A DNA stretch of 64,000 nt from NCBI GenBank assembly GCA_038087875.1, contig JAXLNO010000106.1, positions 1 to 64,000 on the forward strand. Direction: 5' to 3'. Origin of the DNA: Malacoraja senta. Its lineage: Eukaryota. Positions 4,120-33,195 of this stretch are shown piece after piece. Each line of letters starts with the position of its first letter. The stretch's first letter is position 1. The notes beneath the pieces are model-generated. The model did no database searches. It saw nothing but the letters and a program-made list of their open reading frames with translations, and was not told the origin of the DNA. A program made the position numbers and the translations under genes.

Positions 4120-4430
4120 TCAATACGGAAGACGTGGATGGAATTCTGGGTTCATCAGTTTTACTGGATCCCAAAGTTAAAGGTGACGACAGGAAGAAGG
4201 ACATTATTTGGGAGTTCATTTCATCCCTGTCTATGGAAGTGCTATCACCATTTTGCATCATATCCCAGGTGTGTGGTTGGAGGAACCAAGTGATCATTTC
4301 AAGTCCCGATTACAGTATACTCCTTCTAATGCCTCTTTAATGGTAAAAGGATTAGGACACGGAGACCAAGGAGAATACAGACTCACAATCAATGACCAAG
4401 TGGTGAAAATCATACAGTTGTACCTCTTTG
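4120..4430 (+). pseudogene. Gene A exon: N-terminal IgV-like domain of CD2/SLAM/CEACAM type (no Cys), with an apparent 1-bp frameshift near 4210-4240
   Basis: Acceptor tttcctttcAG|, donor TTTG|GTGAGT. One frame reads VNTEDVDGILGSSVLLDPKVKGDDRKKDIIWEF; another reads ITILHHIPGVWLEEPSDHFKSRLQYTPSNASLMVKGLGHGDQGEYRLTI (FxxRL..NASL..DxGxY motif). Length is 311 bp, one short of a phase 1-1 exon. Confidence 0.85.
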
Positions 4431-4650
4431 GTGAGTAGTTTCACTTGTTTATGATGCACATAAACGTGGCAGATCCTCAGGGCCGGATTTACGTACAAGC
4501 TTGACAAGCTTAAGCTTAGGGCCTCGAGATCTAGGGGGGCCTCGCAGAGCTGGATTTATCACTAGGCTTCATAGGCTGAAGCCTAGGGCCTCGAAATCTA
4601 GGGGGCCTCTGGCCAAGGCAGGACACCTGCCGTTCAACTCTGAGCGGGTC

Positions 4651-4696
<46 letters not shown>

Positions 4697-5802
4697 ACTC
4701 TCCATCTCCGCCTGCCATCCGTATCCATGTCCGGGCCGCCGGGTCTCCGCTCTCCGCTCGCTCCTCATCTGCTGGCACGGCCGGCCGCCTTGCACATGCA
4801 CACTGCTACGGCCAGCACATCCTCCCTCTGCTCATGCGCACTGCTACAGCCAGCACATCATCGGCCGCCCTGCGCATGCGCGCTGCCACAGCAACTGGTC
4901 GGCGCTGGGCACTTTCCCCCTCGCTTTGAATTGTGGGAGATCTGGCCGCCATTGCTGTCCGGTCGCCGCCTCGCCACGACCGCTGAAAACCAATGCAGAA
5001 TCACTCCCTGACCCTGGATCTGGTGTAACCCCCTGAAGTAACTCTTGCTTCTGGTGTCCGGGTCCTCCATAAATATTCTAAATGGAATTTAAACTGGAGG
5101 TGGTGGAGGGCTGAACAATAACAGCCTATTGCATTTTATCTGTTTATTTATTCTGTATATATATGGTCTATGGTATATAAACACACTGAACTTTTTTCTC
5201 CTGTTCTGTATTATATTTACATATTCTGTTGTGCTGCAGCAAGCAAGAATTTCATTGTCCTATCTGGGACACATGACAATAAAACTCTCTTGACTCTTGA
5301 CTCGGACTTAAGCAAAGAAGGGTTCTTGGGGAAAAAAGAGGTACCTTAAATTTAGTTGCGCCTGGTTGGGTAACTATGGTAGGGTGAAGACTATGCCATG
5401 CTTTAATTGTGTGGGGGAACTCCATGGAGCAGCCAGCAACTCTGGGTAGAAGAAATTGGGTGATGTTTCGGGTAGAAACCCTTCTTTAGACCCTCTGGTT
5501 TTTTGTGTTTTTAGTTTAATTTAAAGATGCAGCATGGAAACAGGCCCTTCGGCCCACCGAGTCCACGCCGACCACCGATCACCCGTACACTAGTTCTATC
5601 CCACACATTAACGGAGTAAGTCAAGAGTCAATTCTATCATGTCCCAATGAAATCCTTACCTGCAGCAGCACAACAGAATATGTAAACATAGTACTCTGTA
5701 AACAATGTTATAAATGAGAAAACAAAACAATGTATATTTATATATGAATATATAAATATATATGTGTTTCTGTATGTGTATATATAATATCTATACCCCC
5801 CC

Positions 5803-5833
<31 letters not shown>

Positions 5834-6029
5834 ACACACACAATTTCCCTCCTGGGATCAATAAAGTTTTATCGTATAGTATCATGTGTTTCGGAAGGAA
5901 CTGCAGATGCTGGTAGATAGATAGATACAAAAAGCTGGAGTAACTCAACAGGTCAGACAGAATCTCTGGACAAAAGGAAAATATTGTGTTTTGGGTTGGG
6001 TCTGAAATAGGTTCCTGCACACCTTTGGA

Positions 6030-6540
6030 ATGTGGAAGGAAACAAGAGCACCCGGAGAAATCCCATGCGATCAAAGGAAAAAGGAGCAAACTCTATACAG
6101 ACAGCACCCATATTCAGGATCAATTCCGGGCCTCTGGCACTTTTAGGCAGCAACTTTATGGCCAATGTACTGCCCCATAATCTTGAACTTAATTAAAACA
6201 TACAGTAGCTGTAAAGGGGGGACATAGCGTCACTTGGAGATTTAAAACTGAAAATGCATATTTTCATTTTTTTAGTAACCAAAGTTATCAACGTATAATT
6301 TTTTGTGCGTTGGAAAACAAAATATTCTGGCACAGCTGGTAGACTTGCTGCCTCACATGCCAGGGATATGTGTTCGGGCACTGTCTGCGTTGAATTTGCA
6401 CATTCTCCCTGCAAGTGTTAGTCTCCTCCCACATCCCAAAGATGCATTGGCTTTGTAGGTTAACTTGTCTCTGTAAAATTGACCCTAATGTGTAGGGAGT
6501 GGGTGAGGAAAGTGGGATAACAGAACTTGTGTGAATGGGT
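6030..6540. mobile_element. Two head-to-head tRNA-derived SINE copies (V-SINE/HE1-like)
   Basis: A-box-like tggcacagctggtaga followed by gaatttgcacattctccc...cccacatcccaaag (+); inverted copy at 6030-6180. Confidence 0.6.
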
Positions 6541-6982
6541 AGACAAAAATGCTGGAGAAACTCAGCGGGTGAGGCAGCATCTATGGAACGAAGGAATAGA
6601 CAACGTTTCGGGTCGAGACCCTTCTTCAGATTGATGTCGAGGGGGGGGCACGAAAAAGAATGGAAGAGGCGGAGACAGTGGGCTGTGGGAGAGCTGGGAA
6701 TGGGAGGGGAAGGAGGGAGAAAGCAAGGACTACCTGAAATTAGGGTAGCTAATGTTCATACCGCTGGGGTGTAAACTACCCAAGCAAATATGAGGTGCTG
6801 CTCCTCCAATTTGTGGTGGGCCTCACTCTGGCCATGGAGGAGGCCCAGGACAGAAAGGTCGGATTCGGAATGGGAAGGGGAGTTGAAGTGTTGAGCCACC
6901 GGGAGATCAGGTTGGTTATTGCAAACTGAGTGGAGGTGTTGTGCGAAGCGATCGCCAAGCCTGCGCTTGGTCTCACCGAGAT
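6540..6982 (-). mobile_element. Penelope-like 3' fragment nested in the hAT composite
   Basis: LGETKRRLGDRFAQHL...KLEEQHLIF; intact CTGAAGA-stem-GAAACGTT core at 6601-6630 (-). Confidence 0.85.
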
Positions 6983-7559
6983 TGATCATACGCTGAATAA
7001 TCCAACCACATTTTTGTTTGGAAGTGGAAAGAAATAATAGAAATTGCATTCATTGCAATGTGTAAAAAGAGTTGAGATAGTGTATTATAATTTTGCTGCA
7101 TGTCATTGTGGGATATATCATGGCTTGATGGTGAATATGTTTAGTTTGTGACTTTATTTGAAGCAGAAATAATATGTGAATGCTTCATTGAGCATAATTC
7201 CGACTGGTTACTACGCACTTCGTCCGAGCACATTATCGCACGCGTCATGCAAGCCATCTGAATTGACCACCTAAACTGTCATTTGGCAACCTAAAAAGCT
7301 GCAAGGTTGCCGGGCTGACAACAGTGAAAAAAAAGTAAGTGAGAGCCCTTCAAAGCGGTGTCAATCTGGTGGACAATCTTCCTCTACTCGTGGGGGTGTG
7401 GGATTGGGAGGGGCCTCACAAGTGGAACAGCTTAGGGCCTCTCTTCATCTATATCCGGCCCTGCAGATCCTGCAGTTGGTGAAAATCGGAAAAGAATCTC
7501 AGATGCTTGAATCTGAAAAAGCCAGAAAATTCAGGGAAAGCTAACTGAGGCCATCGACA

Positions 7560-9470
7560 GAGGTTACAATGAGGAGGTCACGCCTAGGGATCGGACAGAA
7601 AGTAGTTGGGTGATCACCATTCGGGCAGAAAGTAGATGGGTGATCACCAGGAAAGGGATTAGGCAGAAAGTGCTGGATTCCTCTGTGGCCATTGCCCCTG
7701 ACAATAGGTACATCTCTTTGAAAACTGCTGGCGGGGAGGGGGAAGGATCAGCAACAGTCAGGTCTGAGGCATTGGGCTTGACTGAAGCACAGCGGGAAGG
7801 GTGACGTAAGGCAGAGCAATCTTGATAGGAGATCCGTTAGTGAGGGGGAGAGGCAGGAGATTCTGTAGCAGCAAAAGAGACTCGAGGATGTAATGTTACT
7901 CCCTTATGACGGGGCCCAGGGTGTCTCCAAAACATTTTCAAGCGGGAGGGTGAATAGCTGGAAGTCTGAATGAGGTCCTGCAATTGGAGTGGATACAGGG
8001 AATTAGGCAGAAGGTGAACAAACAGGATCTTTAGGGTAGTGATCTTTGGATTGTCCTAGTGCTATGTGCTAGTGAGGGTAGGAATAGGAAGGTGAATGCA
8101 TGACTGAGGAGTTAGTGTAAGGGACGGGGATTTAGATTTTTAGAACATTGGGATCTCCTCTGGGGGCAGAAGTGACCTGTACCAGGGGGACGGGTTGCGA
8201 CTGAACTGGAGGGAACCAATGGCCTGGTAGGCAGCTTTGCCAGTGCTAATCGGGATCATTGCATCTAGATGGCAGGAGGTGGGATCGAAAGCAGGAGTGA
8301 GGCAGGTGAAAGGCGGGAAGTTGATGAAAGCAATCCCTCAGCAGGATAGACAGGAGCACAGTGGGCAGTGAGGAAGGACTGTAGAATTAACTGATGGGGT
8401 AGGAGGATGAACTCTGCATGGACAGTACATATGACTGGGAATTACTGTTAAGGAAACCTGGGTAAGGAAGGAATAGAACTGGCAACTTAATATTCCAGGG
8501 TACAGGTGTGGCAGGTGAGACACAGGAGGGGGAGTTACTTTACTGATTAAGGAAAATGTCACAGCAATCGTCTGAGATGACATTCCTGATTGGTCATCCA
8601 GTGAAGCTGTAGAGGTGGAGCTGAGGGGGGGAAATGAGGATGATCACCTCTTTGGATGTGTAGTAAAGGTCCCAAATAGTCAAGGGCAATTAGAAGCATA
8701 AATATGCTGGGGGACTGCAAAACTCTTGTCAAAGTTGTGGATTTTAACTTTCCCAATGTAGATTGGGACTGCCACAGTTCCAAGGGCAAAGTGGAATACG
8801 CCAAATGTATTTGACTAAGTTTCCTTAGCCAATATATAGAGGGCCCTACAAGGAGTGGGCAAAGATTGGCCTACTCTTAGGAAAGGCAAGTGACTGAAGT
8901 ATCAGTGATCAAATGTTTTGGGACCAGCAATCACAATTCTATTAGCTTCAACATAGTTATAGATAAGGACAGGCTAATGTTGTGCCACTATTTAAGACGA
9001 GCTGCAAGGAAAAGCCTGGGAACTATAGACCAGTGGACTCAATATCTGTGGTAGGTGAATTACTGGAGAGGATTAGGTAGATGAAGCATTTTAGCATTTG
9101 GATAGACAGAAGCTGATTAGGGATAGTCAACATGTGCGAGATCGTCTTTGATTGAATTTTTTGAAGTAACAAGGTTGACAAGGACAAGACTGTGGATGTT
9201 TCCTACATGGATTTCGGAAAGGCCTTCGATAAGGTTCTGCCTGGTAAGCTGCTCTAGAAGGTTAGATCGTATGGCATCCATATAGAGCTAGCTGCCCTTG
9301 GATACAGAATTTGATTCATGGAAGGAAGCAGAGAATGGTGGTGGTGGATTGTGTATCAAACTAGAGGCCTGTGACTAGTGGTGTGCCTCAGAGATTGGTG
9401 CAGGGCCCAATTGCTGTTCATGGTTTAAATCAACAATCAGATGAGAATGTGCAAGGCATGATTAGCAAGT
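7560..9470 (+). mobile_element. Heavily decayed CR1 LINE (ORF1/endonuclease/RT remnants)
   Basis: CR1-like motifs (ETW..DWQLNIPGY; MDFGKAFDKV; VTSGVPQ) with many stops and deletions. Confidence 0.7.
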
Positions 9471-12400
9471 TAACGGCCTTTCCTGCCGGAGACCGGCCAG
9501 AGCTTCAGCAGCGGCGCAGCACTGAATTCCATCGCGGAGCGGGCGATGCTTTACCGGGGATCACCGTGTTGGAGCTCCGGAGGGCCTGCCGACTTTAACA
9601 CTGTGGAGCTGTGGTCTGTGAAGCGTCCAACCGCGGACGGCGCTGACTTTAACATCGCAGAGGCCTGGGATCATTTGCCGAGGAACGCCAGTGTTGGAGC
9701 TCCGCCCAGCTTGGCCTGTGGACTTCGGAAGCTGCGGTCTCCGGTAAGAAGCGGCCGATTCGGAACTCCAAGCCGCTGAGAGTGTTCTTCCATTCTGACA
9801 CCGGTGCTTCGATCATCTCGGCGAGAGGGCCTGAACAGTAGCGGCGACTGCGGAGGGCTCAATAGGCCCCGACCACGGGTGATGGAGATGATTGCCTTCC
9901 CTCACAGTGGGAAACGTTGATTCCGCTGTGGGGGATGTTCATGTTAAAATCTATAGTGTTGGGTTCATTTCATTTTATTTGTGTGACTGCATGGTAACTC
10001 AAATTTCACTGCACCAATTGGTGTATGTGACAATAAATGTAACTTGAATTTGACACTAAAGTAGGTAGTCTTGGAGATAATTAAGTGGTTATCAAAATTA
10101 GAGCAAGATCTTAATCAGCTGGGCAAGTGGGCTGAACAATAGCTAATGGAGATTAATGCAGATAACCATGCTGTGTTATATATTGGGAAGTCAAACCAGG
10201 GCAGGACTTTCACAATGAATGGTAGGGTCCTGGGGAGTGTTGTAAAGGACAGGGATCTAGGAGTTCAGGTACAGTTTCCTGTTGGATTAACTGGACTGTT
10301 CACAGAACAAAAATGGATGGCAGGGGAACTGATTCTTGCATTGGAAGACAAAGCATATTATCTAGAGTTGGAGAAGTCAATATTGAGTCCAGAAAGTTGC
10401 AAACTGACCAGATGGCAGATGATGTGATGTTCCTTGAACTTGTGTTGGGCCTTATTGTAACAGTGTGGAAGGTCACAGATGGAGAGGTCAAGCTTCGGGT
10501 CACTCCTGCAGACTGAGTCCAGGAGTACCAGAAAGTGATCGCTCAATCTCCATTAGGTTTCTCCAGTGTAGAGACTACGTTGCAAATACAGAATGCAGTG
10601 CACTAGATTGAGAGAAACAAGGTGAAAGGATAGGCACGGACATGTTAGGGATAGTCAGCATGGCTTGTGTGGGAAATCATGCCTCACAGGATTGATGAGG
10701 AACACACGGCAGTGGATGTTGTCCACATGGATTTAAGCAAGGCATTTGACCAGATCTCATGTGGTAGGCATGTCTAGAAGGTGAAATTGCATGGAAGCCA
10801 AGGTGAGCTAGCCAATTAGATTCAAAATTAGTTTGGAGAAAATTCAAAGTGTTGTTATGAAGGCTTGTTTTTCTAATTGGAGTCCTGTGATCAGAGGTGT
10901 GCCACGGAGGTGTGGCACAGTGGTTTGTTAAATACATTAGCAATTTGGAAGACAATGTGGTAAATTGTTAGAACATTTGCAGATTACGTAAACATTGGGG
11001 TTATACTAGACAGTAGGAAAGGATGTCTAAGTTTGCAACAAGATCCAAATCAGTTGGGATGGTGGGCAAGGAATGGCAAATTAAATGTAATTCTAACAAG
11101 TGTGAGGTATTGGTCTTTAGATTCTAGACCAGGACTTGCACAGAATGTGGTAGAGCCTGGAGAGTGCTCCAGAACAGAGATCAAGTGGATTATAAAGCTA
11201 CCTCTCAAAGATTCCTGTTGTACTGAATCGATATATAATTATTCATATCACTCCCAAAACACTAATCTCCACCAATAAACTGTGCTGCATCAGTGATGTC
11301 AAACTCATGAATGATGGGTTGAAGGGCCTGTCTCAGAGCTGTGTCTCTCCACGAATCTCAGAGAAAGATCTTTGCCGAGGAAGTCATTCTCAAAGTCCAC
11401 GGGTCATCATGGTGCAGCAGAGCCTGATGAAAGGTTGGGGGAAGAGGAGGGAGTGAGCTTGATTTTACAAGGGGAGGTGGAAACTGGACATAATCCTGCC
11501 AATTTACAGCAACATTTTGTGTTTTGTTCATTGCAAGTCATTACAGTTCAATAATCAACATTTCCCCCTTTAGCTGAGCTGACAGAAGCTTGGATATCGA
11601 CCAACTCCAGCTCCGTGGGTTCCACTATCCAGCTCACCTGTAATGTCAGTGGAGATGTTGACGAGTATCGGTGGTGGAAAGATGGAGGGGAAATCTCCCG
11701 GCATCACCAGCTAATAGATCAGAACAGGAATCTTGTGATTCCAGGAGCTTCAAGACGTGACTGTGGAACATACACCTGTGTTGCAACCAATCCCGTCAGC
11801 CGCATCCAGAAAAATTACACGCTGACTATTCACGGTGAGCTTGGTTTATGGATGACATTCACAGGTTAAATCTTGTCATCATCTGCTATTGGTGAGCTTT
11901 AGAAAGCGATCTGTCAACACTGCTGCTGAGAAAACCTGGAGGAAAATTAGACTTCAGAGAAATAATGCGACACATTCAGTCAACCTAGCCTGGTCAATCT
12001 GGTCTATGCTGGCCTAGCCTGTGAAATCCAGCCAGTCCCTCTCCTCTGCCCTTTCCCCACTGCCAGACAATGTTTCTTCCAGATACTTATCCAGCTCTCC
12101 AAATATTACAATTAAATAAATCTCCACAATGACCCCTGGTAAATCTAACCTAACCCTAACCAGCTTTGATTCTTGTGACAATTCCTCAATCTTTGTCCTG
12201 TTCATTACCCTCTCTATCTACCTGGTCCATAATAGATGTTTAAATACCTCTATTGGATCTTCTCAACTTCCTCTGTTCGAAGAACAACCTTGGCCCTCTC
12301 CAATCTGCCCACATAACCAAGACATCTCATTCCAGGAATCATTATGGTAAATCTCTCCGAATCACCCCTTCCAAAGTCTTTTTTTGTCCTAAACTCCAGC

Positions 12401-12694
12401 ATTTTGTTTCCTAAAGGTTCATCATGACTTACTTCATCTGGTGTTCTGTGCCTCCAATTATGTACCCAGGAACCTATGTGGTTTCAATGTGCTCTGCCAC
12501 TTTCAATGAATCTTATACTTGTACATTCCAGATCTGGCTGTTCTTCCCAATTCACTCTGGTTGTCATTGCATCTTATTATTCCTATCATAATGTAAGACT
12601 CCACATTGCGCTGCATTACAATTATCTGCCACGGATATGCCTATTCCAGCAGCTTGTCTACATCTTAACAGCTTTCATTATCCTGCTTTCCATT
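8064..12694 (+). repeat. Tandem segmental duplication, copy A (includes C2 exon 1)
   Basis: Collinear with 13483-18301 from atgtgctagtgagggtagg to atcctgctttccatt. Confidence 0.92.
11574..11834 (+). CDS. Gene A exon: C2/I-type Ig domain, copy 1
   Basis: Acceptor cccctttAG|, donor CACG|GTGAGC, 261 bp, phase 1-1. Reads IQLTCNVSG..YRWWKDG..LVIPGASRRDCGTYTCVATNPVS. Confidence 0.9.
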
Positions 12695-13482
12695 GTCTTC
12701 CCTCACAGTGGGAAACTCCTGTTTTGTGCGTGGGCATCACCCTGGTGTGGAGGTTGGGGTCCGATGGCGATGCATCACGGTCAGTGACTGTGGGACGCTC
12801 CCACGGGTGGAGACGGAGAAGGGGGAGAGAGAGAGAGAGGGGGAGAGAGAGAGGGGGAGAGGAGAGGGAGAGAGAAGAGGAGAGAGAAGAGGGGAGAGAG
12901 AGAAGGGACAGAGTGAGGGGTAGAGAGAGAAGGGGAGACGGGAGCGTGGGGTTCATTTTCCCACACAAGCCATCGGTGACTGGGCAATCTGAACCCAAGC
13001 ACCAAGTTGAAAGCGGCCGAAGATGTGCAGCCCCCACTCTCCCACGGCCACCCTCCGCGGGCTGCGGGTCGGGTGGAGCGGAGGTTTGGGACAATGTTCA
13101 TGCCTTCACAGTGATGTGATGGACGCGGGGGTCTGGACTAATCGCTGACAAGTCCCGCCCCCCGGCAACGTCATGTCTGATATTGGACTTTTCTGTTGAG
13201 CGGCAGTCGGTCCTTTGGCCTGTAGGCGACGCCGCCTTTAGGGTAGGTGGCGTTTCGACAGAGCGGCCATTCGGTAAGTTTGATTTTAGGCGACGCAACT
13301 TTTCGGTTAGTTGGCTTTTAGGCGTCCCGCCCTTTCGGTTAGTTTGCATTTAGGCATCCCATCCTTTCGGTTAGTAGGCATTTCGTCTTCGGACTCTTTC
13401 GGTTTATTGGCGTTTCGGCCTCGTTTCCGTTCGGTTCTTTGGCTTCAACTTCATGTCTGTCGGCGCCATGTCCGGGTACCCA
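12695..13482 (-). mobile_element. Orphan DNA-transposon-like end at the duplication junction (possibly MULE/Ricksha-like)
   Basis: Minus-strand terminus GGGTACCCGGACATGGCGCCG followed by many short ccgaaa/cgaaa subterminal repeats; GA-rich tract at 12814-12940. Confidence 0.4.
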
Positions 13483-15758
13483 ATGTGCTAGTGAGGGTAG
13501 GAATAGGAAGGTGAATGCGTGACTGACGGGTTAGTGTAAGGGACGGGGATTCCGATTTTTAGAACATTGAGATCTCCTCTGGGGGCAGAAGTGACCTGTA
13601 CCAGGGGGATGGGTTGCACCTGAACTGGAGGGAATAAATGGCCTGGTAGGCAGGTTTGCCAGTGCTAATCGGGATCATTGAATCTAGATGGCAGGAGCTG
13701 GGATCCAAAGCAGGAGTGAGACAGGTGAAAGGCGGGAAGTTGATAGCAGGATAGACAGGAGCACAGTGGGCAGTGAGGAAGGACTGTAGAATTAACTGAT
13801 GGGGTAGGAGGATAAACTCTGCATGGATAGTACATGTGACTGGGAATTACTGTTGTTAAGGAAACCTGAGTAAGGAAGGAATAGGACTGGCAACTTAATA
13901 TTCCAGGGTACAGGTGTGGCAGGTGAGATACGGGAGGGGGAGTTACTTCACTGATTAAGGAAAATGTCACAGCAATCGTCTGAGATGACATTCCTGATGG
14001 GTTATCCAGTAAAGCTGTAGAGGTGGAGCTGAGGGAAAAATGGGGATGATCACCTCTTTGGGTGTGTACTAAAAGTCCCAAATAGTCATGGGGAATTATA
14101 AGAATAAATATGCTGGGGGACTGCAAAGCTGTTGTCAAAGTTGTGGATCTTAACTTTCCCAATGTATATTGGGACTGCCATTGTTCCAAGGACAAAGTGG
14201 AATATGCCAAATGTATTTGGCAAGTTTCCTTAGCCAATATATAGAGGGCCCTACAAGGAGTGGGCAAAGATTGGCCTACTCTTTGGAAAGGCAAGTGACT
14301 GAAGTATCAGTGATCACATGTTTTGGGACCAGCAATCACAATTCTATTAGCTTCAACATAGTTATAGATAAGGACAGGCTAATGTTGTGCCACTATTTAA
14401 GACGAGCTGCAAGGAAAAGCCTGGGAACTATAGACCAGTGGACTCAATACTTGTGGTAGGTGAATTACTGGAGAGGATTAGGTGGCTGAAACATTTTAGC
14501 ATTTGGATAGACAGAAGCTGATTAGGGATAGTCAACATGTATGAGATCGTGTCTCACGACTTTGATTGAATTTTTTGAAGTAACAAGGTTGACAAGGACA
14601 AGACTGTGGATGTTTTCTACACGGACTTCGGAAAGGCCTTTGATAAAGTTCTGCATGGTAAGCTGCTCTAGAAGGTTAGATCGTATGGCATCCATATAAA
14701 GCTAGCTGCCCCTGGATACAGAATTTGATTCATGGAAGGAAGCAGAGAATGGTGGTGGTGGATTGTTTATCAAACTACAGGCCTGTGACTAGTGGTGTGC
14801 CTCAGAGATTGGTGCAGGGCCCAATTGCTGTTCATGGTTTAAATCAACAATCAGATGAGAATGTGCAAGGCATGATTAGCAAGTTAATGGCCTTTCCTGC
14901 CGGAGACCGGCCAGAGTTTCAGCAGTGGTGCAGCAGTGAATTCCATCGCGGAGCGGGCGATGCTTTACCGGGGATCACCGTGTTGGAGCTCCGGTGGGCC
15001 TGCCGACTTTAACACTGTGGTGCTGTGGTCTGTGAAGCGTCCAACCGCGGACGGCGCTGACTTTAACATCACAGAGGCCTGGGATCTTTTGCCGAGGAAC
15101 ACCAGTGTTGGAGCTCCGCCCAGCTTGGCCTGTGGACTTCGGAGACTACGTTGCAAACACAGAATGCAGTGCACTAGATTGAGAGAAACAAGGTGAAAGG
15201 ATAGGCATGGACATGTTATGGATAGTCAGCATGGCTTGTGTGGGAAATCATGCCTCACAGGATTGATGAGGAAGACACGGCAGTGGATGTTGTCCACATG
15301 GATTTAAGCAAGGCATTTGACCAGATCTCATGTGGTAGGCATGTCTAGAAGGTGAGATTGCATGGAAGCCAAGGTGAGCTAGGCAATTGGATTCAAAATT
15401 AGTTTGGAGAACATTCAAAGTGTAGTTATGAAGGCTTGTTTTTCTAATTGGAGTCCTGTGATCAGAGGTGTGCCACAGAGGTGGGCCACAGTGGTTTGTT
15501 AAATACATTAGCAATTTGGAAGACAATGTGGTAAATTGTTAGAACATTTGCAGATTACTTCAAAATTGGGGTTATACTAGACAGTAAGAAAGGATGTCTA
15601 AGTTTGCAACAAGATCCAAATCAGTTGGGATGGTGGGCTAAGGAATGGCAAATAAATTGTAAGTTTAACAAGTGTGAGGTATTGGTCTGTAGACTCTAGA
15701 CCAGGACTTGCACAGTAAATAGTAGAGCCTGGAGAGTGCTCCAGAACAGAGATCAAGT

Positions 15759-16806
15759 TTGAAACAAGTTTATTCATGGATAACCCCTTGAGATGGACAG
15801 CCATCTCGTTTTCGAGGGGGTCCAACATAGAACATACAGCACAAGACATAACATACATAAAGGCTCTCATTGACCCACCTACCCACACACCAATCCCAAA
15901 ACCCCTCCATCCCCACTTGTTATAGTTTATAACAATTGTTAATTAGCTTTACATATCCAATAATAACAATAGTTATGTGTTACAGCATAATGTTAGTGCA
16001 CAATACCATATACCACCTATCATACATCATACGTTAATACATACTATCAACATTATTACATAATATATTATTTCATGATATTGTGACATAATACAATATA
16101 AGACCTTGTTACACTATGCAATACAATAATACATAAGTGTAATGGCCATGCATATACAATAGTTATGCCAAATGATCACACTCAGAGCAAGCTAGATAAA
16201 GGAGCTCGAAGACTCTAATACTAGAAACAGGTACATGGTTTTATAAGGAAGGGTAAAAGTGTATTTTTAAATAGACGAAATGAGCTAATAGTTCTTATGG
16301 TACTAGGCAGAGTGTTCCAGTCAGAAGGAGCTTTGTATTTAAATGCACGTCTCCCAATTTCTTTGTTAGTTCTTGGAATGAAAAAGAAGGGTTGCTGAAT
16401 ATGTCTTAGTGAATATGAGGGTGTGTATGGTAATAGGTCTTGTTTTAAATAAGAAGGGTAATTGAGGTGGATGCATTTAAAGATGAACTGGAACCAGTGG
16501 TAGCATCTTCGAGCGTGGGGGGATAACCAGTTTAGAGTTTCGTACATAGAACAGTGGTGAGTTTTTTTATGGACACCTTAAAATATATCTGCAAAGACTA
16601 TTATAAACTACATTAAGGGGTTGAAGAAGTATATCAAATGTATTCTGTTAGGCAATATCAGCATAATCCAGTGTTGGTAGTAGTAGTTGAGAGACAATTA
16701 TTTTTCTCATCTGAAAGGTGAAACAATTTATATGGCGGTAAAGAATAGATAGATTACAGCTACGTTTTTTAGTAATCGTCTCACTATGCTGCGACGATTA
16801 CTAAAT
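15759..16806 (-). mobile_element. 5'-truncated L2-clade LINE inserted only in duplicate B
   Basis: ORF 16221-16547 GRRAFKYKAPSDWNTLP..FKNTL; tail aataaacttgtttcaaacttg; aagt on both sides; empty site at about 11186 in copy A. Confidence 0.75.
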
Positions 16807-17197
16807 AAGTGGATTATAAAGCTACCTCTCAAAGATTCCTGTTGTACTGAATCGATATATAATTATTCATATCACTCCCAAAACACTAATCTCCACTAAT
16901 AAACGGTGCTGCATCAGTGATGTCAAACTCATGAATGATGGGTTGAAGGGCCTGTCTCAGAGCTGTATCTCTCCACGAATCTCAGAGAAAGATCTTTGCT
17001 GAGGAAGTTATTCTCGAAGTCCACGGGTCATCATGGTGCAGCAGAGCCTGATGAAAGGTTGGGGGAAGCGGAGGGAGTGAGCTTGATTTTCCAAGGGGAG
17101 GTGGAAACTGGAAATAATCCTGCTAATTTACAGCAACATTTTGTGTTTTGTTCATTGCAAGTGATTACAGTTCATTAATCAACATCTCCCTCTTCAG

Positions 17198-17458
17198 ATA
17201 AGCTGTTAGAAGCTTTGATATCGACCAACTCCAGCTCCCTGGGTTCCACCATCCAGCTCACCTGTAATGTCAGTGGAGATGTTGACGAGTATCAGTGGTG
17301 GAAAGATGGAGGGGAAATCTCCCGGCATCACCAGCTAATAGATCAGAACAGGAATCTTGTGATTCCAGGAGCTTCAAGACGTGACTGTGGAACATACACC
17401 TGTGTTGCAAACAATCCCCTCAGCCGCATCCAGAAAAATTACACGCTGACTATTCACG
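17198..17458 (+). CDS. Gene A exon: C2/I-type Ig domain, copy 2 (tandem duplicate)
   Basis: Acceptor ctcttcAG|, donor CACG|GTGAGC, 261 bp, open frame; about 10 nt differences from copy 1. Confidence 0.88.
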
Positions 17459-18560
17459 GTGAGCTTGGTTTATGGATGACATTCAAGAGGTTAAATGTTG
17501 TCATCATCTGCTATTGGTGAGCTTTAGAAAGCAATCTGTCAAAACTGCTGATGAGAAAACCTAGAGGAAAATTAGACTTCAGAGAAATAATGCAACACAT
17601 TCAGTCAACCTAGCCTGGTCAATCTGGTCTATGCTGGCCTAGCCTGTGAATTCCAGCCAGTCCCTCTCCTCTGCCCTTCCCCCACTGCCCGACAATATTT
17701 TTTCCAGACACTTATCCAGCTCTCCAAATGTTACAATTCAATAAATCTCCACAATGACCCCTGGTAAATCTGACCTAACCCTAACCAGCTTTGATTCTTT
17801 GTCCTCTTGTACTTTACCCTCTCTATCTACTCGGTCCATAACAGTTGTTTAAATATCTCCATTGGATCTTCTCAACTTCCTCTGTTCGAAGAACAACCTT
17901 GGCCTCTCCAATCTGCCCACATAACCAAGACATCTCATTCCAGGAATCATTATGGTAAATCTCTCCGATTCCCTCTTCCAAAGCCTTTCTTTTTGTCCTA
18001 AACTCCAGCATTTTGTTTCCCAAAGGTTCATCATGACTTACATCATCTGGTGTTCTGTGCCTCCAATTATGTACCCAGGAACCTAAGTGGTTTCAATGTG
18101 CTCTGCCACTTTCAATGAATCTTATACTTGTACATTCTAGATCTGGATGTTCTTCCCAATTCACTCTGGTTTTCATTGCCTTATTATTCCTATCATAATG
18201 TAAGACTCCACATTGCGCTGCATTACAATTATCTGCCACGGATATGCCTATTCCAGCAGCTTGTCTACATCTTAACAGCTTTTATTATCCTGCTTTCCAT
18301 TCGGCACACCTCCCAAGTTTTGTATCATCCACAACATTGGATTTGGTGCTGTGAATCACCAATAAATTATTCTGTCTCGTTGACTCATCTTGGAGGGAAC
18401 ATACAGGCCTTATGTTACAGGTTGATAAGACTGCAGGAGTTGGTACATTCACGTCTCTGCAGCAGATAGGGAAGCCGTTCACTTTCTACGGGTATTGTCA
18501 ACTTTAGCACATATTTTTCTGATGCGCTGATACATAACTCCAATTTACTTTTAATTGCAG

Positions 18561-18677
18561 GCTTTCCCCGTCTGGATATCACAATTGTTATTCTTTCGAT
18601 CATAAACCTGGTGATTTATTCAGCCTATCTAATTGCCTGCCTGTCTCAGCACTGCCAGAAGACTAAATTGGACAAAG
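18561..18677 (+). CDS. Gene A exon: TM1 plus basic cytoplasmic loop
   Basis: ttttaattgcAG| ... AAAG|GTATCT, 117 bp, phase 1-1. GFPRLDITIVILSIINLVIYSAYLIACLSQHCQKTKLDK. Confidence 0.8.
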
Positions 18678-18689
18678 GTATCTGTCATT

Positions 18690-21153: not shown

Positions 21154-21243
21154 CTGTGAAGAGGGTCAAACATTGGTTACTTGGCCTGCATATCTGTAAC
21201 ATTGTGGTTCTAGGTGCCATCCTTCATTGGATCACAATTAAAG
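21154..21243 (+). CDS. Gene A exon: TM2
   Basis: tttctctgtAG| ... AAAG|GTAAGT, 90 bp, phase 1-1. AVKRVKHWLLGLHICNIVVLGAILHWITIK. Confidence 0.78.
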
Positions 21244-24600: not shown

Positions 24601-27207
24601 TCACAAGTTTACCTACTCCAACCAACACGTACTAATTCACCTTCCTTAATCCATCCATTCTGCACCTACTGCCTTCTAACCGCCCCACCCCCGCCATCTA
24701 TCCACCCCGCCCTGATTCACACACACCCCCCTCCCTGACCCTATTGTGCTGGAAATGTCTTCAGAGCGAACATTGACTATGTTTGATAACGGAATGCAAT
24801 CAAATGTGTTTTAATTCCCAATGTTATTATTTGTTTTAATCCATAAAGATGGATTAATTAAATTGTGAACACGTGAAACATTAAAACCGCAGTGTTCGAT
24901 TGTCACAGCTGCCGTTGACACGTTATTACAGAATTCATTTTAACAGCAAATCAATGCTCTTAATATGGAGTATCAGTACTGTATTTATTTAATGAGCAAC
25001 ATTCACAACTATACGTACGCATATATGTTATCATGGTCCAGGATTTATTGACACAGGTTGGTCATACGCTGAATAATCCAACCACATTTTTGTTTGGAAG
25101 TGGAAAGAACTAAAAGTGTAAAAAGAGTTGAGATACTGTCTTATAATTTTGCTGCATGTCATTGTGGGATATATCATGTCTTGATTGGTGAATATGTTTA
25201 GTTTGTGACTTTATTTGAAGCAGAAATAATATGTGAATGCTTCATTGAGTATAATTCCGACTGGTAACTACGCACTTCGTCCGAGCACATTATCGCACAC
25301 GTCATGCAAGCCATCTTAAATGACCACCTAAACTGTCGTTTGGCAACCTAAAAAGCTGCCAAGGTTGCCCGGCTGGCAACAGGGGGGAAAAAGTTAAGCG
25401 GGAGCCCTGGACCACCTGGCCATTCAATCACGATCCTGCTGCAATTATTGACAACCACTTTCTGCAATATCACCCACTTTTGTATCATTAGCAAACTTAC
25501 TAATCTTGCCGTGTATATTCTCATCCAAATCATTGAAAAATATGACAAATAGCCCAGCACCACTAGTCACAAGCCTCCAGTCCAAGAAGCAACCTTTCAC
25601 CATTACCCTCTGATTCCTGCCATGAAGCCATTTTTCTATCCATTCAGCTATTTCTCCTTGGATCCCATGGGATCGGACCTTCCAGAGCAGCCGACAATAT
25701 GGAATCTAGTCAAATGCTTAGCCAAAATCCATATATATAAATAACATCCGCAGCTCTGCCCTCATCAACCTCTTTGGTCAAATCAGATTCCTGAGACATA
25801 AAAACACCCATGTACAAAGCCATGCTGACTATCCTTAATCAGCTCTTGTCCATCTAAAGCCCTTGTGTATGTATATCTATCCCTCAGAATACTCTTCTGT
25901 AACTTTATGATTACAAATGTTGAGCTCACTGGTCTATAGTTCCCAGCCCTTTTTGAATAGGCACAATACCCTCCAGTCTTCTGGCACCTCACCTATATTT
26001 AATGATACTCATAAATTTCAGCCAGGGCTCCTGCAATGTCCTCTCTAGTTTCCCCACAGTGTCCTCGCACATATCTGATCTGGCCCAGATTTGTCAACCT
26101 TCATAAGCATCAGTACCTTCAGCACCTGCTCTAACTGCTCTCAAGATACTTCTATTGAACGCCCCAAGTTTCTCAGTCCTCAGTACAAAGATGTATCATT
26201 TGTCCTAAAGACAGAACAGTGTAGTTTCTAATTTGTGAAAAGCAGTGAGGGCTCAATAAACATATGCGGAGGATGTGTTTATTGATCATTAAAATGTAAT
26301 TGAGGGCTACAGAAAGTCATCACCATAGCCCATGGAATAAATGTCTTTAAACCCAAGCACAGATTTCAGTTATGCTGCAGCATCCTGGTTTGACCACACT
26401 TGGAGAATGGAGTGGTTTGGGGGCCCTGCAGATGTAATTTGTCCTTTTTGTGTAGATTTACAAAATGTAGAGTACAGGAAGTGGGTCTGCGTTCCATGGA
26501 GTTCAGACGGACAGTGTGTGACGTGATGGAAGTTGTTGACGCATTCATGCTGACCATAGGTAGAAACCATTTCTGTTGTTTGAGATGTGTGGGATAGGGA
26601 AGCTTGGCTCGATCAATTGGGGCACGATTCTGTTTTTATAATTGGTAATCACAACTCCTGGAGTGGTTGACTTGGTGATGCCACTTTTTATTCCATCATC
26701 TGAGTCAATCTGGAGAAATAGTGGTTCAGGTTGGTGACCTATCATCAGACGGAGTGAAGAGAGAAATAATTTCATTTTCAGAGATGAGTCAAAGGATTGA
26801 GGAAACAAAAGGGCATCTCTGTGAAGGTGGAGACCAGGAGAGGTTTCTGAGTTCCCGCCACTGGTCTCCCCACGGCTAGTGAACGCATTGCCCTCTGTCA
26901 CTCTTCATTTGATGAAGATGTCAGACTGACACACACAGAATGGGTCAGCAGTGATTTCAGTATCAGTGTACGTGCACTCACACCAGTTTCCTATCATGGG
27001 TTAGTTTCCCAGAGGCCTCACCCACTACAGTGAAAACAGCATATGTTCCAGTGGGGAAACAAGCCTTGCAGAGTTACCTATGTTCCTAGGACCAATATAT
27101 AAATTGTGTATTCCAATATTGAGGAGTAGGATTATTGCATTTTATGTTTAATTTCCTGGCAATCACTGTGTAAATTGCAGACCTTTAATGTTGGATCTTT
27201 GCTCCAG

Positions 27208-27330
27208 GTGCTGAAAGTGTACTGGTGGCAGGTTTATGCATCGTGTCCATCCAGTTTCTGGCTTCGATTCTACCATTCGCTGTTCCGATGTTAGGCAACC
27301 TGTGTATGAACAGATTCCAAAAAAAGAACA
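27208..27330 (+). CDS. Gene A exon: TM3 plus basic loop
   Basis: ctttgctccAG| ... AACA|GTAAGG, 123 bp, phase 1-1. GAESVLVAGLCIVSIQFLASILPFAVPMLGNLCMNRFQKKN. Confidence 0.76.
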
Positions 27331-27419
27331 GTAAGGAGCAGATCATGAATTGATTTTAACATTTCCAATCTTATCAATGAAACATGTTCTCTAACCCTCA
27401 CGTCATCTGTACTTGACAG

Positions 27420-27503
27420 GATTTAGGAATCTTGTATGTGGATTGCAGGTCATTGTGATGGTCATCTCAATCATTTCCTTAACAATGGTGATTCATCAAA
27501 ACA
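27420..27503 (+). CDS. Gene A exon: TM4
   Basis: Branch-like ctaac upstream; gtacttgacAG| ... AACA|GTGAGT, 84 bp, phase 1-1. RFRNLVCGLQVIVMVISIISLTMVIHQN. Confidence 0.76.
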
Positions 27504-28386
27504 GTGAGTTTGCCCGGAGCTTTTCATTACCGTTTTGTAACACAAGCTTATGATCAGTATTTCCTGTCTCTCACAATGAGCCCGAGGTGGTCACTCCTAG
27601 CAATGTTGTTGTCAGATCTATGTGCAGAAACAAGATTTGTGTGGATGACATTAAGGAGTTTTATTCTCATGTAGACTGTCTCTACACCTTCTGCTGGCTC
27701 AGTAACAGATGCATCCTTGGAACCACATAAGTTGGTCAGCAGGGTTAGAACAGTCTTAGTACACAGGCCTGTTACCAAGCCCTTCCATTTTAACAAGTTG
27801 CACCTAAACATACTACAAAAAGCAAAGAACTGACCAGCGACAGATCCCTGCATCAGGAGAAAAGACAAGGGCACCCTGATTGGATTTTATAGTGAAGATC
27901 TTGCCTAATCATTGAAGAGGTAACAGGGTAGATATGGAAAAAATAAACATATTGTTAAGGCATGTAAAGTAAGAAGTGGTATATGCTAATTGACTGACTA
28001 AGATCAGAAAATGTAACGGGTGGGAGGGGAGATAGAGAAATGAATAGAATGTGCAGCAAGGAACTGCAGATGCTGGTTTAAACCGAAGATGACACAAAAT
28101 GCTGGAGTGACTCAGCAGGACAGGCAGCACCTATGGAGAAGGAATTCAGGTCTAGTCCCTTCTTCAGACTGAAATTCACGGGAAAGGGAAACGAGCAATG
28201 TGGATGATGATGTAGATATAGAACAAATTAATGAAAAATAACAATGATAAGGAAACCGGCCATTGTTTGCAAGGTGAGAATTAAGAGCTGGTGTGACTTA
28301 GGTTAGGGAGGGATGGAGTGAGGGAATGCAGGGGTTACTTGAAGCTAGAGAAATCAATATTCATACCGCTGGGTTGTAACCCGCCC

Positions 28387-30645
28387 AATAACCATATAAC
28401 CATATAACTATAACAGCACGGAAACAGGCCATCTCGGCCCTTCAAGTCCGTGCCGAACATTAAAAAAAAAAATGTTTTTTTAATAAAAAATAAATACTTC
28501 CCCCTAGTCCCATCTACCTGCACTCAGACCATAACCCTCCATTCCCTTCCCGTCCATATACCCATCCAATCTATTTTTAATGGATAACATCGAACCTGCC
28601 TCCACCACTTCCACTGGAAGCTCATTCCACACAGCCACCACTCTCTGAGTAAAGAAGTTCCCCCTAATGTTCCCCCTAAACTTCTGTCCCTTAATTCTCA
28701 AGTCATGTCCCCTTGTTTGAATCTTCCCTACTCTCAATGGGAAAAGCTTATCCACGTCCACTCTGTCTAATCCGCTCATAATTTTAAAGACCTCTATCAA
28801 GTCCCCTCTTAACCTTCTGCGCTCCAAAGAATAAAGACCTAACTTGTTCAACCTTTCTCTGTAACTTAGTTGCTGAAACCCAGGCAACATTCTAGTAAAT
28901 CTCCTCTGTACTCTCTCTATTTTGTTGACATCCTTCCTATAATTAGGTGACCAAAATTGTACTCCATACTCCAGAATTGGTCTCACCAATGCCTTGTACA
29001 ATTTTAACATTACATCCCAACTTCTATATTCAATGCTCTGATTTATAAAGGCCAGCACACCAAAAGCTTTCTTTACTACCCTATCTACATGAGATTCCAC
29101 CTTCAGGGAACTATGCACAGTTATTCCTAGATCCCTCTGTTCAACTGCATTCCTCAATTCGCTACCATTTACCGTGTACGTCCTATTTTGATTTGTCCTG
29201 CCGAGATGTAGCACCTCACATTTGTCAGCATTAAACTCCATCTGCCATCTTTCAGCCCACTCTTCCAAATGGCCTAAATCTCTCTGTAGACTTTGAAAAT
29301 CTACTTCATTATCCACAACACCACCTATCTTAGTATCATCTGCATACTTACTAATCCAATTTTCCACACCATCATCCAGATCATTGATGTACATGACAAA
29401 CAACAGTGGACCCAACACAGACCCCTGAGGCACCCCACTAGTCACCGGCCTCCAACCTGACAAACAGCCATCCACCATTACTCTCTGGCATCTCCCATTC
29501 AGCCACTGTTGAATCCATCTTGCTACTCCACCATTAATACCCAACAATTGAATCTTCTTAACCAACCTTCCATGAGGAACCTTGTCAAAGGCCTTACTGA
29601 AGTCCATATAGACAACATCCACTGCTTTACCCTCATCAATTTCCCTAGTAACCTCTTCGAAAAATTCAAGATTAGTCAAGCATGACCTTCCAGGCACAAA
29701 TCCATGTTGACTGTTCCTAATCAGACCCTGCTTATCCAGATGCTTATATATATTATCTTTAAGTATCCTTTCCATTAATTTGCCCACCACTGACGTCAAA
29801 CTAACAGGTCTATAATTGCTAGGTTTATTCTTCGAACCCTTTTTAAACAACGGAACAACATGCGCAGTACGCCAATCCTCCGGCACTATTCACGTTTCTA
29901 ATGACATTTGAAATATTTCTGTCATAGCCCCTGCTATTTCTACACTAACTTCCCTCAATGTCCTAGGGAATATCCTGTCAGGACCTGGAGACTTATCCGT
30001 TTTCATATTTTTCAAAAGTGTCCGCACCTCCTCTTCTTTGAATCTCACAGTTTCCATTGCTACTCTGCTTGTTTCCCTTACCTCACATAATTCCATATCC
30101 TTCTCCTTCGTAAATACCGAAGAAAAGAAATTGTTCAATATCTCCCCCATCTCTTTTGGCTCTGCAGATAGCTGTCCACTCTGACTCTCTAATGGACCAA
30201 TTTTATTCCTTGTTATCCTTTTGCTATTAATATAGCTGTAGAAACCCTTTGGATTTACTTTCACCTTACTTGCCAAAGCAACCTCATATCTTCTTTTAGC
30301 TTTTCTAATTTCTTTCTTAATATTCTTTTTACATTCTTTATACTCCTCAAGCACCTCATTTACTCCATGCTGCCTATAATTATTGTAGATCTCTCTCTTT
30401 TTCCGAACCAAGTGTCCAATTTCCCTTGAAAACCATGGCTCTTTCCATTTTTTACTATTTCCTTTCAACCAAACAGGGACATAAAGATTCTGTACTCTTA
30501 AAATTTCACCCTTAGATGTCCTCCATTTTTCTTCTACATCCTTCCCATAAAAAACATGTCCCAATTCACTCCTTTTAAATCCTTTCGCATCTCCTCAAAG
30601 TTAGCCTTTCTCCAAACAAAAATCTCAACCCTAGGTCCAGTTCTG
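28387..30645 (-). mobile_element. Young 5'-truncated CR1 LINE with a near-intact RT, nested in a Penelope fragment (28050-28390 and about 30720-30870)
   Basis: ORFs 29890-30564 and 28504-29886 separated by one in-frame stop; YMDFSKAFDKV, GVPQGSVLGP, YADD; (ataaccat)n tail. Confidence 0.95.
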
Positions 30646-31249
30646 GAATGGAATGATTGGGATTGTGGAGGAGGGGGAGGGGACAGCCAATAATGGAGAC
30701 TCAAGTATATTACAAGAGATGTAAGGGTTAGATCTAAGGTGGACACAAAATGCTGGAGTAACTCAGCGGGACAGGCAGCATCTCTGGAGAGAAGGAATGG
30801 GTGACGTTTCGGATCGTGACCCTTCATACTGATGTCAGGGGAGTGGGCAGGACAGAGATCTGACAGGAACGGTAAATAAGAGCAAATAATGGCAGATGGG
30901 GTCAAGGCAGGGAAACTGATTTTGTACGTTTTAGTAGGAAATCTACTGAAAAACAACACTAATTTTCAAGTGGAAAAGCACTAATCACTAAAATCATTAG
31001 AAAGAAGCCATCCAAACACTGGTGTTTATTTCTAGAGGTAGAATTATACAGTGGGGAGATGGTGTTGAACGATAAATCTGGATATCCTTTATCTCTAGGA
31101 TCTCTTGTTAATGTGTATAGAGAATAAACGTGGCTTTGTGATCAGATAAATCCCACCGAGTGTCAGTTCTACTTCAGGTCCTTGCTGCACTGTGCAAACT
31201 GTATGTGAGGCTGTTTTGGACAGTGCCATTGAATCAGACATAGTCTTGC

Positions 31250-31692
31250 AGCATAGAAACAGGCCTTTTGGCCCAACCGGTCAACATGTCTCATCTACAC
31301 TTGTCCCACCTACCTGTGTTTGGTCAATTTCCCACTAAATCTGTGCTGTCCCATCCATGTGCTTGCCTAAATGTTTCTTAAACATTGCGATAATAACTGT
31401 CTCAACAACATCCTCTGGCAGCTCGTTCCATAGACCTACCACCCTTAGTGTGAACAAGTTACCCCTCAGATTCTTATTAAATCTTTTCCTCCTCACCTAA
31501 ACATATGTCCTCTGGTTCTCAATTCCCCTACTCTGTGCAAGAGACTCTGTGTGTCTCCCTGATCTATTCTTCTCATGATTTTATACACCTCTAAGATCAC
31601 CCCTCATCCTCCTGCACTTTAAGGAATAGAGCTCTCGCATGCTTAACCTCTCCCCATAGTTCAGGCCCTCAAGTCCTGGCAACATCTTCGTA
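31250..31692 (-). mobile_element. CR1 3' fragment
   Basis: Similar to the 21780-22260 CR1 3' end. Confidence 0.7.
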
Positions 31693-31794
31693 CAGTGCTG
31701 CTGGCTGTTTTATTGTGTTTCAGATGTGGAGACTGCTGCTGCATTACAGATGTGGTGTTGGTTTACTCAGTGGCTTCACTTTGTACATTCCTAG

Positions 31795-31887
31795 GTTGTG
31801 ACAGCAGCCTTACAACCTGGGGAATATTTTTCACTTCAAGGATCGTGTGTGTGGTGATCTTCATCTCTCTTAGTGTGTTCCTTCACT
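31795..31887 (+). CDS. Gene A exon: extracellular loop Cys plus TM5
   Basis: tacattcctAG| ... CACT|GTAAGT, 93 bp, phase 1-1. SCDSSLTTWGIFFTSRIVCVVIFISLSVFLH; aligns without gaps to the paralog exon at 62490-62588. Confidence 0.82.
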
Positions 31888-32703
31888 GTAAGTAGCAAAA
31901 TTATCTAAGCATTCACCAGTGCCATCACTTTCAGTTAAACCATTTACTTGTGTCATTCTGTCACTTCTGTTCTGAAAGGGAGCAGTTGTCTAATCTACAG
32001 CACTTTACCAGTCTGTTGCTGGCTGGATGCTGGCATTTGGGAACAGTTCTGGGCTGGATTTTGCTGAACCTTGCTGGAAACTCTGCTTGGAGCTCCCTGT
32101 ATTTCACAGCATCATCCTGATGGCTGTTGGGACTCTTGCAGGAGCAAGGAAACCCTAAACTTCCTGGCTGAGTCTGTAGTTTCCCACACTGGTGACCCAG
32201 TGTGTGTTTGGTTTCTGAAGTAGAGCAGACCACAATGTGAACACCGAGTGCAGTACACTCAATTGGAAAAAGTGCAATTGCATCATTAAATGGGTATTTG
32301 GTGGAATAAACTTGTTGAAACCTGGAGAAACTGCAGAGGATGATCAGTTGAAACCAATGAGTGTGAGTACCAGGGACATTGTGCTCTGTCTAGGACAGAG
32401 GGTAGAAGCTGAGGTGTGGGAGGTAGAAGATATGTCAACTGTCTTGGGTCACCTGTTGCATTGATGATTGAACACTTTCACACTGTCTGATCCTGGAATC
32501 GCCCCAATCGGTTAATCAGAGGGACCATCTGCACTAAGTATTCAAGCTCAACTGTAGTAAAGACATTGTGAGTAAAATATGACACAAGGAGTAAAATATG
32601 AGTTTAGTCAATTGTAACATTTTAAAGTCCTGTGATGAGACAAGTAACCTCTGACAATATTGTGCCTTATGTCAACAATTTACAAATATTTTATTCATTC
32701 CAG

Positions 32704-32747
32704 GCAAAGATACAAGTGGGAACATCAACACTGTTAAAGGAAAGCAG
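32704..32747 (+). CDS. Gene A exon: short cytoplasmic tail exon
   Basis: ttttattcattccAG| ... GCAG|GTATTT, 44 bp, phase 1-0. CKDTSGNINTVKGKQ; homologous exon at 57252-57298 (-). Confidence 0.78.
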
Positions 32748-33117
32748 GTATTTTGATAATGAAGTCCTGTAGTTTTGTTTTAAAGCTCATTTAGAGTTCT
32801 AAACTAACAGACTCGTATCCAGGTACGAGCACAAATCATTCTACTGTGTTCTTACTGCTGCTCTCTGACACTGACAACCCAGTCCAGAGGGAATCGTAAT
32901 TTCTCTGGTGCACATTTTATTTCGCTGTTTCAGAACCTGTGCTCGGGCGCATTCCCATTGATTGACATTTTCTAACTGTAATATTTTATCCAAGTTTGTA
33001 CCTGATTCAAATTGATGTCTGCATTAGTCTTCTGATTCCATCTCCCTCTATGAATCATATTTCTGTTGATTAACTGAAATTTACCACTGCATGTAACAAA
33101 TGCACTCTTTATTTTAG

Positions 33118-33195
33118 GATATTATAGAATTGCAACAATTGAAAACAACCACACCAGACTACACAACTGATCCTGGATCCCTGCCACCCGATTGA
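33118..33195 (+). CDS. Gene A terminal coding exon
   Basis: ctttattttAG|GAT, phase 0. DIIELQQLKTTTPDYTTDPGSLPPD*; homologous to 56627-56743 (-). Confidence 0.75.
   Translation, partial: DIIELQQLKTTTPDYTTDPGSLPPD

Follow-up and report, generated by a model that had tools for sequence, protein, structure and literature searches.

The forward strand of the first 64,000 nucleotides of contig JAXLNO010000106.1 from the skate Malacoraja senta (assembly GCA_038087875.1; we call this whole stretch the window) carries, between positions 4120 and 33195, a spliced gene whose exons encode an immunoglobulin (Ig) V domain, two C2 domains, five predicted transmembrane (TM) helices and a short cytoplasmic tail. 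An earlier note, made from the DNA letters, had proposed ten exons with canonical splice sites and compatible phases that assembled into a CD2/CEACAM-type ectodomain on a CD47-like membrane domain. We give a probability of roughly three in four to the reading that the gene belongs to a multigene family of sharks and rays in which a CEACAM/CD2-type ectodomain sits on five membrane helices, that this copy is probably defective, and that its membrane module is analogous to that of CD47.

Each of the ten exons lies where it had been placed, flanked by an AG acceptor and a GT donor, and the acceptors are preceded by pyrimidine tracts (Table 1). The TM1 donor (GTATCT) is weak, with an in-phase alternative donor after 18689. 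The lengths of the five helix exons (117, 90, 123, 84 and 93 nucleotides (nt)) and the two basic loops were also as described. The proposed compatibility of exon phases broke down at the V exon, whose 311 nt are not a multiple of three. Spliced in silico, the exons from the second C2 copy to the last coding exon formed a single open frame of 295 residues, and this product matched the membrane-module profile of the family introduced below from end to end (198 bits, expectation value (E) 6e-63). Each helix occupies its own symmetrical phase-1 exon, so that any of these exons could be duplicated or skipped without breaking the frame.

To gauge how often such exons occur by chance, we searched the entire window on both strands for stretches of 78-129 nt between an AG and a GT that were open in phase 1-1, had a pyrimidine tract upstream and encoded a 19-residue hydrophobic stretch. 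Across these 128 kilobases (kb) the scan returned only the five TM exons of the gene, one minus-strand TM exon of a paralogue and two strays; about 0.2 such exons would be expected by chance in the 13 kb that follow the Ig exons, where five were observed.

Table 1. Exons of the Malacoraja senta gene and other features of the window.
Feature	Position	Strand	Details
V-domain exon (CD2/CEACAM-type, no cysteine)	4120-4430	+	311 nt, frameshifted; in-frame stop 4338-4340 when read from acceptor
C2 exon, copy a	11574-11834	+	261 nt, phase 1-1, open; Pfam Ig_3 2.6e-14, I-set 2.6e-13; splice sites
C2 exon, copy b	17198-17458	+	261 nt, phase 1-1, open; Pfam Ig_3 3.7e-14
TM1 exon, helix 1 and start of basic cytoplasmic loop	18561-18677	+	117 nt
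TM2 exon, membrane helix 2	21154-21243	+	90 nt
TM3 exon, helix 3 and basic cytoplasmic loop	27208-27330	+	123 nt
TM4 exon, membrane helix 4	27420-27503	+	84 nt
TM5 exon, outer loop with conserved cysteine (CDSS) and helix 5	31795-31887	+	93 nt
Cytoplasmic tail exon	32704-32747	+	44 nt, phase 1 in, phase 0 out
Last coding exon	33118-33195	+	TGA stop 33193-33195
TTCAT TTCAT, frame-breaking tandem duplication of 5 base pairs	4215-4224	+	DNA alignment; one copy in the A. radiata gene
Tandem duplication of ~5.5 kb	8064-12694 vs 13483-18301	+	self-BLAST, ~94-95% identity
Convergent paralogue, last membrane-helix exon	62490-62588	-	61-71% identical (E 1e-9 to 1e-11) to last helix of long Mobula, Hemitrygon and Hypanus members
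Convergent paralogue, last coding exon	56627-56743	-	stop 56629-56627

Database, Pfam and structure comparisons were made with the proteins of relatives or with single exons, and the window's spliced product was analysed by script and profile. When the second half of the V domain was searched against 1.84 billion representative proteins, 86 matches came back, the nearest of which was LOC116990216 of the skate Amblyraja radiata (XP_032903651/2). Isoform X1 of this gene (XP_032903651, 431 residues) matches all of the window's exons in the same order. Protein identity to A. radiata was 76-89% for the V exon, 84% for the C2 exon (isoform X1), 68% for TM1, 59% for TM2, 72% over 25 residues for TM3, 85% for TM4 (isoform X1), 90% for TM5 and about 78-80% for the 44-nt tail exon; the last exon was 60% identical to that of A. 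radiata and 72% identical to the tail of Pristis. The window and the A. radiata locus are colinear, their unique stretches being 82-92% identical in DNA, and the window gene is either the orthologue of the A. radiata gene in another skate or a close paralogue. A search of the window with the A. radiata signal exon, as DNA and as protein, found no signal-peptide exon, in agreement with the earlier note, which had not found one either; the A. radiata exon is 5.1 kb upstream of its V exon, whereas the window begins only 4.1 kb before its own. Isoform X1 also carries, between its TM1 and TM2 exons, a further exon of 54 nt (locus L001, 41863-41916), which is without counterpart in the window, Pristis or Cetorhinus and may be a prediction artefact.

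Damage and duplication in the Malacoraja copy

When read from its acceptor, the V exon changes frame near 4215 and meets an in-frame stop at 4338-4340. The DNA around the duplicated TTCAT is otherwise ~94% identical to the A. radiata gene, and without the 5-base-pair (bp) duplication the exon has 306 nt and is in phase. The duplication thus shifts the frame and leads to the stop at 4338, which leaves the window copy without an intact reading frame. The second change concerns the C2 exons, which differ from each other at 10 of 261 nt (96% identity); A. radiata has only one C2 exon in this gene and no V frameshift. By these alignments, the second C2 exon is the product of the recent 5.5-kb tandem duplication. 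The architecture in the earlier exon model stands; what that model had overlooked is that the V exon is frameshifted and that the second C2 domain arose recently.

As assembled, the window copy cannot yield the complete protein, and it is probably a young pseudogene or a null allele, unless the assembly has slipped. We think it rather unlikely that the gene is functional, which would mean that assembly or sequencing introduced the extra TTCAT in error, that only one allele has it, or that a V-less form is made by skipping the V exon. In its favour, the nine other exons are all open and their splice sites intact, loss of the V exon from the transcript would preserve the frame since all internal exons are phase 1-1, and exon-skipped isoforms of relatives are listed in RefSeq. 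However, the insertion is a clean 5-bp tandem duplication rather than a homopolymer length error, the database search matches included no predicted protein from the window locus, and the differences from A. radiata are near neutral. In the V domain, 18 differences between the two species are non-synonymous and 1 is synonymous, and the overall ratio of non-synonymous to synonymous differences per site (pN/pS) is near 1. This pattern fits either diversifying change, typical of genes for immune recognition, or a dead copy under relaxed constraint.

The elasmobranch family and its ectodomain

The gene has many relatives. Members of a tandemly expanded family were seen in 16 elasmobranch species, including skates (Amblyraja and Rhinoraja) and other rays (Hemitrygon, Hypanus, two Mobula species and Pristis) as well as sharks (Mustelus, Scyliorhinus, Cetorhinus, Rhincodon, Chiloscyllium, Heterodontus and Heptranchias). 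Loci are numerous within a genome and often neighbours on one chromosome. Another RefSeq-predicted member is LOC127585900 of Pristis pectinata, and many further matches of the half-V search have about five hydrophobic segments after V and C2. We mapped the exon plan for three RefSeq proteins, and it was identical in Amblyraja (a skate), Pristis (a sawfish) and Cetorhinus (the basking shark): a signal exon, V, C2, five exons of one helix each and small tail exons. With its V, C2, five helix and tail exons colinear with those of A. radiata, and with its match to the membrane profile, the window gene falls within this V-C2-five-TM family.

A profile of the membrane region recognized members as far as distant sharks, and in the profile search the last elasmobranch member had an E of 1.6e-68, whereas the next best match, teleost NCAM2, had one of 4e-17 and matched in its Ig domains only. 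Teleost matches in the V-domain search were likewise multi-Ig proteins that have no membrane module. A word-indexed protein search with the 86-residue C2 exon gave no candidate in the allowed length band, and the same kind of search with the membrane region of one protein returned four near relatives only. Within the limits of these searches, the five-helix module appears from sequence comparison to be confined to elasmobranchs.

RefSeq names for family members run from 'uncharacterized' through HEPACAM-like (hepatocyte cell adhesion molecule-like), CEACAM1-like and contactin-like to VEGFR2-like, and none is CD47-like. Dozens of elasmobranch RefSeq entries named 'HEPACAM-like', 'contactin-like' or 'VEGFR2-like' are in fact members of one family under wrong names. 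The earlier note knew of no described family with this architecture, and we found none in the literature searched, although predicted members are present in RefSeq in number under uninformative names. The pentaspan Ig family is therefore apparently undescribed.

The assignment of the ectodomain to the CD2/SLAM/CEACAM type held up well. The V domain of the window gene has no cysteine. When a full-length relative was compared with solved structures, the best match over V and C2 in one stretch was CEA (E 2.3e-23), followed by CEACAM1 and CEACAM6, and the V domains of relatives gave weak matches to the Pfam 2B4 model, down to 2.8e-7. Like CEACAM, CD2 and SLAM proteins, then, members have an N-terminal V domain that is free of the canonical disulfide, followed by a C2 domain with a disulfide, and show sequence similarity to them; they also share the habit of forming clustered, fast-evolving gene families in which V-domain change is mostly non-synonymous. 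The resemblance ends at the membrane. CEACAM, CD2 and SLAM proteins span the membrane once or carry a glycosylphosphatidylinositol (GPI) anchor, whereas the skate and shark proteins stand on a five-helix anchor. CEACAM1 and the SLAM receptors, moreover, typically have immunoreceptor tyrosine-based inhibitory or switch motifs (ITIM or ITSM), which the tails of this family lack.

The ectodomain is modular among relatives. A Hypanus isoform has V directly on five helices (P0151), a Heterodontus protein has the form V-C2-C2 with two near-identical C2 domains (P0117), and V-V-C2 forms also occur (P0008, P0102). The C2 duplication in the window can thus be seen as an event that recurs in the family.

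The membrane module and its comparison with CD47

The proposal of an Ig V-C2 ectodomain followed by five membrane helices and a short tail drew support from the exons, from the relatives and from structure prediction. We aligned the membrane regions of 26 family sequences and used the alignment both for an AlphaFold2 model and for counting charged residues in the loops. The model contained five helices of 26-36 residues, with a mean predicted local distance difference test score (pLDDT) of 78.7 and a predicted template-modelling score (pTM) of 0.76, so that the helix number did not fall below the five proposed. A first model from 13 sequences, with a pLDDT of 62.8, was too poor for use, and its fold searches gave noise. 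Lysine and arginine together averaged 7.5 residues in loops 1 and 3 and 2.1 residues in loops 2 and 4, and the loops assigned to the inside had more of them than those assigned to the outside in 26 of the 26 sequences. The positive-inside rule is thus kept throughout, in line with the N-out/C-in topology that had been suggested from the window gene.

Two further features characterize the module. The outer loop before helix 5 contains a nearly invariant cysteine, within CDSS in rays and GCEP in sharks. The tails are short (median 44 residues), and among 43 distinct tails an ITIM-like motif was found in 2 and an ITSM in none. We also asked if a single exon, duplicated again and again, could have given rise to all five helix exons. 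The five helix exon blocks showed no detectable similarity to one another in profile-profile comparison (probabilities of 7% or less, no better than reversed controls), which neither supports nor excludes such an origin.

CD47 has been described as the sole five-span receptor of the immune system and is without a paralogue in humans (PMC8410850, PMC8327215). Its full-length structure has been solved, and in the human protein Cys245, in the loop before helix 5, forms an inter-domain bond with Cys15 (PMC8410850). The CD47 group, which includes CD47-like proteins of poxviruses, is defined in Pfam by PF08204 (V-set_CD47) and PF04549, and it shares a common design with the skate and shark family: Ig outside, five helices after it, and N-out/C-in orientation. 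Each membrane helix of CD47 is encoded by its own exon, and several small exons encode its tail. Both have a short cytoplasmic tail that is encoded on small exons and is free of a tyrosine signalling motif, and both have a cysteine in the outer loop before helix 5. The differences are as clear. The family has a cysteine-free V domain of CD2/CEACAM type, usually separated from the membrane by one or more C2 domains; CD47 is a single gene, whereas the family is large and tandemly expanded; and CD47 has five helices, whereas helix number varies within the family.

We regard it as unlikely that the module is a highly diverged relative of the CD47 five-helix domain, whether by common ancestry or by exon shuffling onto a CEACAM/CD2-type ectodomain. 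The shared design speaks for such a relationship, as do the conserved cysteine at the position of CD47 Cys245 (PMC8410850) and the Hypanus isoform in which V joins the five helices directly. Language-model features of the membrane part, computed within the whole protein, moreover, ranked the CD47/OPG166 cluster first for two distant members (0.69 and 0.66). However, the other entries in those lists were Ig proteins, which hints at an effect of Ig context, and the match to the CD47/OPG166 cluster was gone when the module was queried alone, leaving unrelated multi-pass families at low recognition. The feature match therefore reflected the Ig context, and we do not count it as a sign of kinship.

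Searches aimed at the module itself gave no trace of CD47. PF04549, the Pfam model of the CD47 transmembrane region, had no match in ten full-length members at E up to 1, nor, with the limit raised to 10, in any helix exon of the window taken singly, and Pfam gave nothing useful on these exons; PF08204 gave sub-threshold matches only, and these fell on the C2 domain. The family membrane profile had zero matches among 177,635 PDB sequences at E up to 10, although the presence of the CD47 entry in this copy of the PDB was unconfirmed, and the TM2 exon alone found nothing among PDB sequences. As for the comparison by Foldseek and an AlphaFold model that the earlier note had recommended, CD47 was not returned among the top 50 PDB matches of Foldseek, its top 30 Swiss-Prot AlphaFold matches or the top 50 of VIA-align, a search independent of Foldseek; no match rose above noise, and such tools handle helical bundles poorly. 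In addition, the V domain has no cysteine with which to form the disulfide that ties the IgV domain of CD47 to the loop before helix 5.

As a statement of kinship, then, the 'CD47-like membrane domain' finds no support in the PF04549 search, the PDB profile search or the three fold searches. Between the two origins that had been put forward, an independent pentaspan Ig family fits better than exon shuffling of a CD47-like module, for which no kinship is detectable. The module is best treated as family-specific, analogous to the anchor of CD47 and not demonstrably related to it.

By far the least probable alternative, which we discount, is that the gene encodes an Ig receptor with one membrane span (V-C2-C2-TM1) and that the open frames after it look like helices by chance: all that favours it is the general expectation that CD2/CEACAM-type proteins are mostly single-pass or lipid-anchored, against which stand the excess of helix exons over chance expectation, the 59-90% identity of TM2-TM5 to A. 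radiata exons in the same order, the match of the whole module to the family profile at E 6e-63 and the exon plan common to sawfish and shark.

Several considerations lower our confidence in the placement of the gene in an elasmobranch family with a defective copy and a CD47-analogous module. The ratio of non-synonymous to synonymous substitution rates (dN/dS) between the window and A. radiata is ~1.3 for the membrane exons, a value partly inflated by misaligned ends that nevertheless indicates weak constraint. Between Amblyraja and Pristis the Ig exons have a ratio of 0.54 and the helix exons one of 0.88, the latter again a sign of weak constraint, which suggests that the helices are constrained mainly in character and less in exact sequence. 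The frameshift may be an assembly error or present on a single allele, and V-exon skipping keeps the frame, so that a pseudogene is only the probable reading. The missing match to CD47 is compatible with very old common ancestry, since neither sequence nor fold searches deal well with helical bundles. The restriction to elasmobranchs comes from one full-database search with half of the V domain and one word-indexed search, the evidence for the family consists of genomic DNA and computer-predicted RefSeq models of relatives, and the function proposed below is wholly inferred.

Helix-number variation, possible function and other features of the window

The number of helices is not fixed within the family. 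Exon-type profiles showed that units of the helix-1 and helix-2 types are repeated several times in long members (P0010, P0119, P0122, P0132, P0133), and other members (P0120, P0121, P0124) have an apparent helix 1 - helix 2 - helix 5 arrangement. This suggests that the membrane domain grows and shrinks by duplication and loss of exons. RefSeq also lists isoforms that skip one helix exon and have four spans (P0003, P0019, P0074, P0058, P0081); the orientation of everything downstream would thereby be flipped, and these isoforms are either non-productive splice forms or annotation artefacts.

A broader view, which we hold tentatively and at somewhat less than even odds, is that sharks and rays possess a large, undescribed class of multi-pass Ig receptors, independent of CD47, in which a CEACAM/CD2-type head is mounted on a helical bundle encoded by symmetrical one-helix exons, its three, five, seven or more helices varied by exon duplication and skipping, and in which the genes lie in fast-evolving tandem clusters like those of immune recognition genes. 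If true, this would be a second invention of the 'Ig domain on a helical bundle' in vertebrates.

In the predicted topology, the CEACAM/CD2-type ectodomain, with its cysteine-free V domain and one or more C2 domains, faces outward, with the five-helix bundle as its anchor and a cytoplasmic tail of ~40 residues on the other side. A role in cell-to-cell recognition is probable for the family, by analogy with CD47 and with CEACAM, SLAM and CD2 proteins. The fast-changing V domain would bind ligand. Because the tails are without the usual tyrosine motifs, the helical bundle may itself support lateral association or signalling.

The existence of a second five-helix family in the Ig superfamily would alter the picture of CD47 as the lone five-span immune receptor. 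That the family is large and has no detectable kinship to CD47 would imply that the design arose more than once, or that its age and divergence have been greatly underestimated. The family would also offer a natural system in which to study what an Ig recognition domain gains from standing on a helical bundle, and its variation in helix number would illustrate how membrane domains are built at the level of exons.

Near its far end, the window contains part of a convergent paralogue on the minus strand (Table 1), which corresponds to the 3' end of a member of the long subfamily whose upstream exons lie beyond the window end. A minus-strand open frame at 55200-56110 contains the CCCH zinc-finger motif CPYGTRCHFIH, typical of ZFP36/tristetraprolin, within proline-rich sequence. 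The remaining features are repeats: transposon remains at 28507-30594 (minus strand), with a reverse-transcriptase frame of 461 residues inside the TM4-TM5 intron; an AT-rich element resembling a long interspersed element (LINE) at 38684-41641 (plus strand; 29% GC), downstream of the gene; and a retrovirus-like pol/integrase frame, also transposon remains, at 48143-50142 (minus strand).

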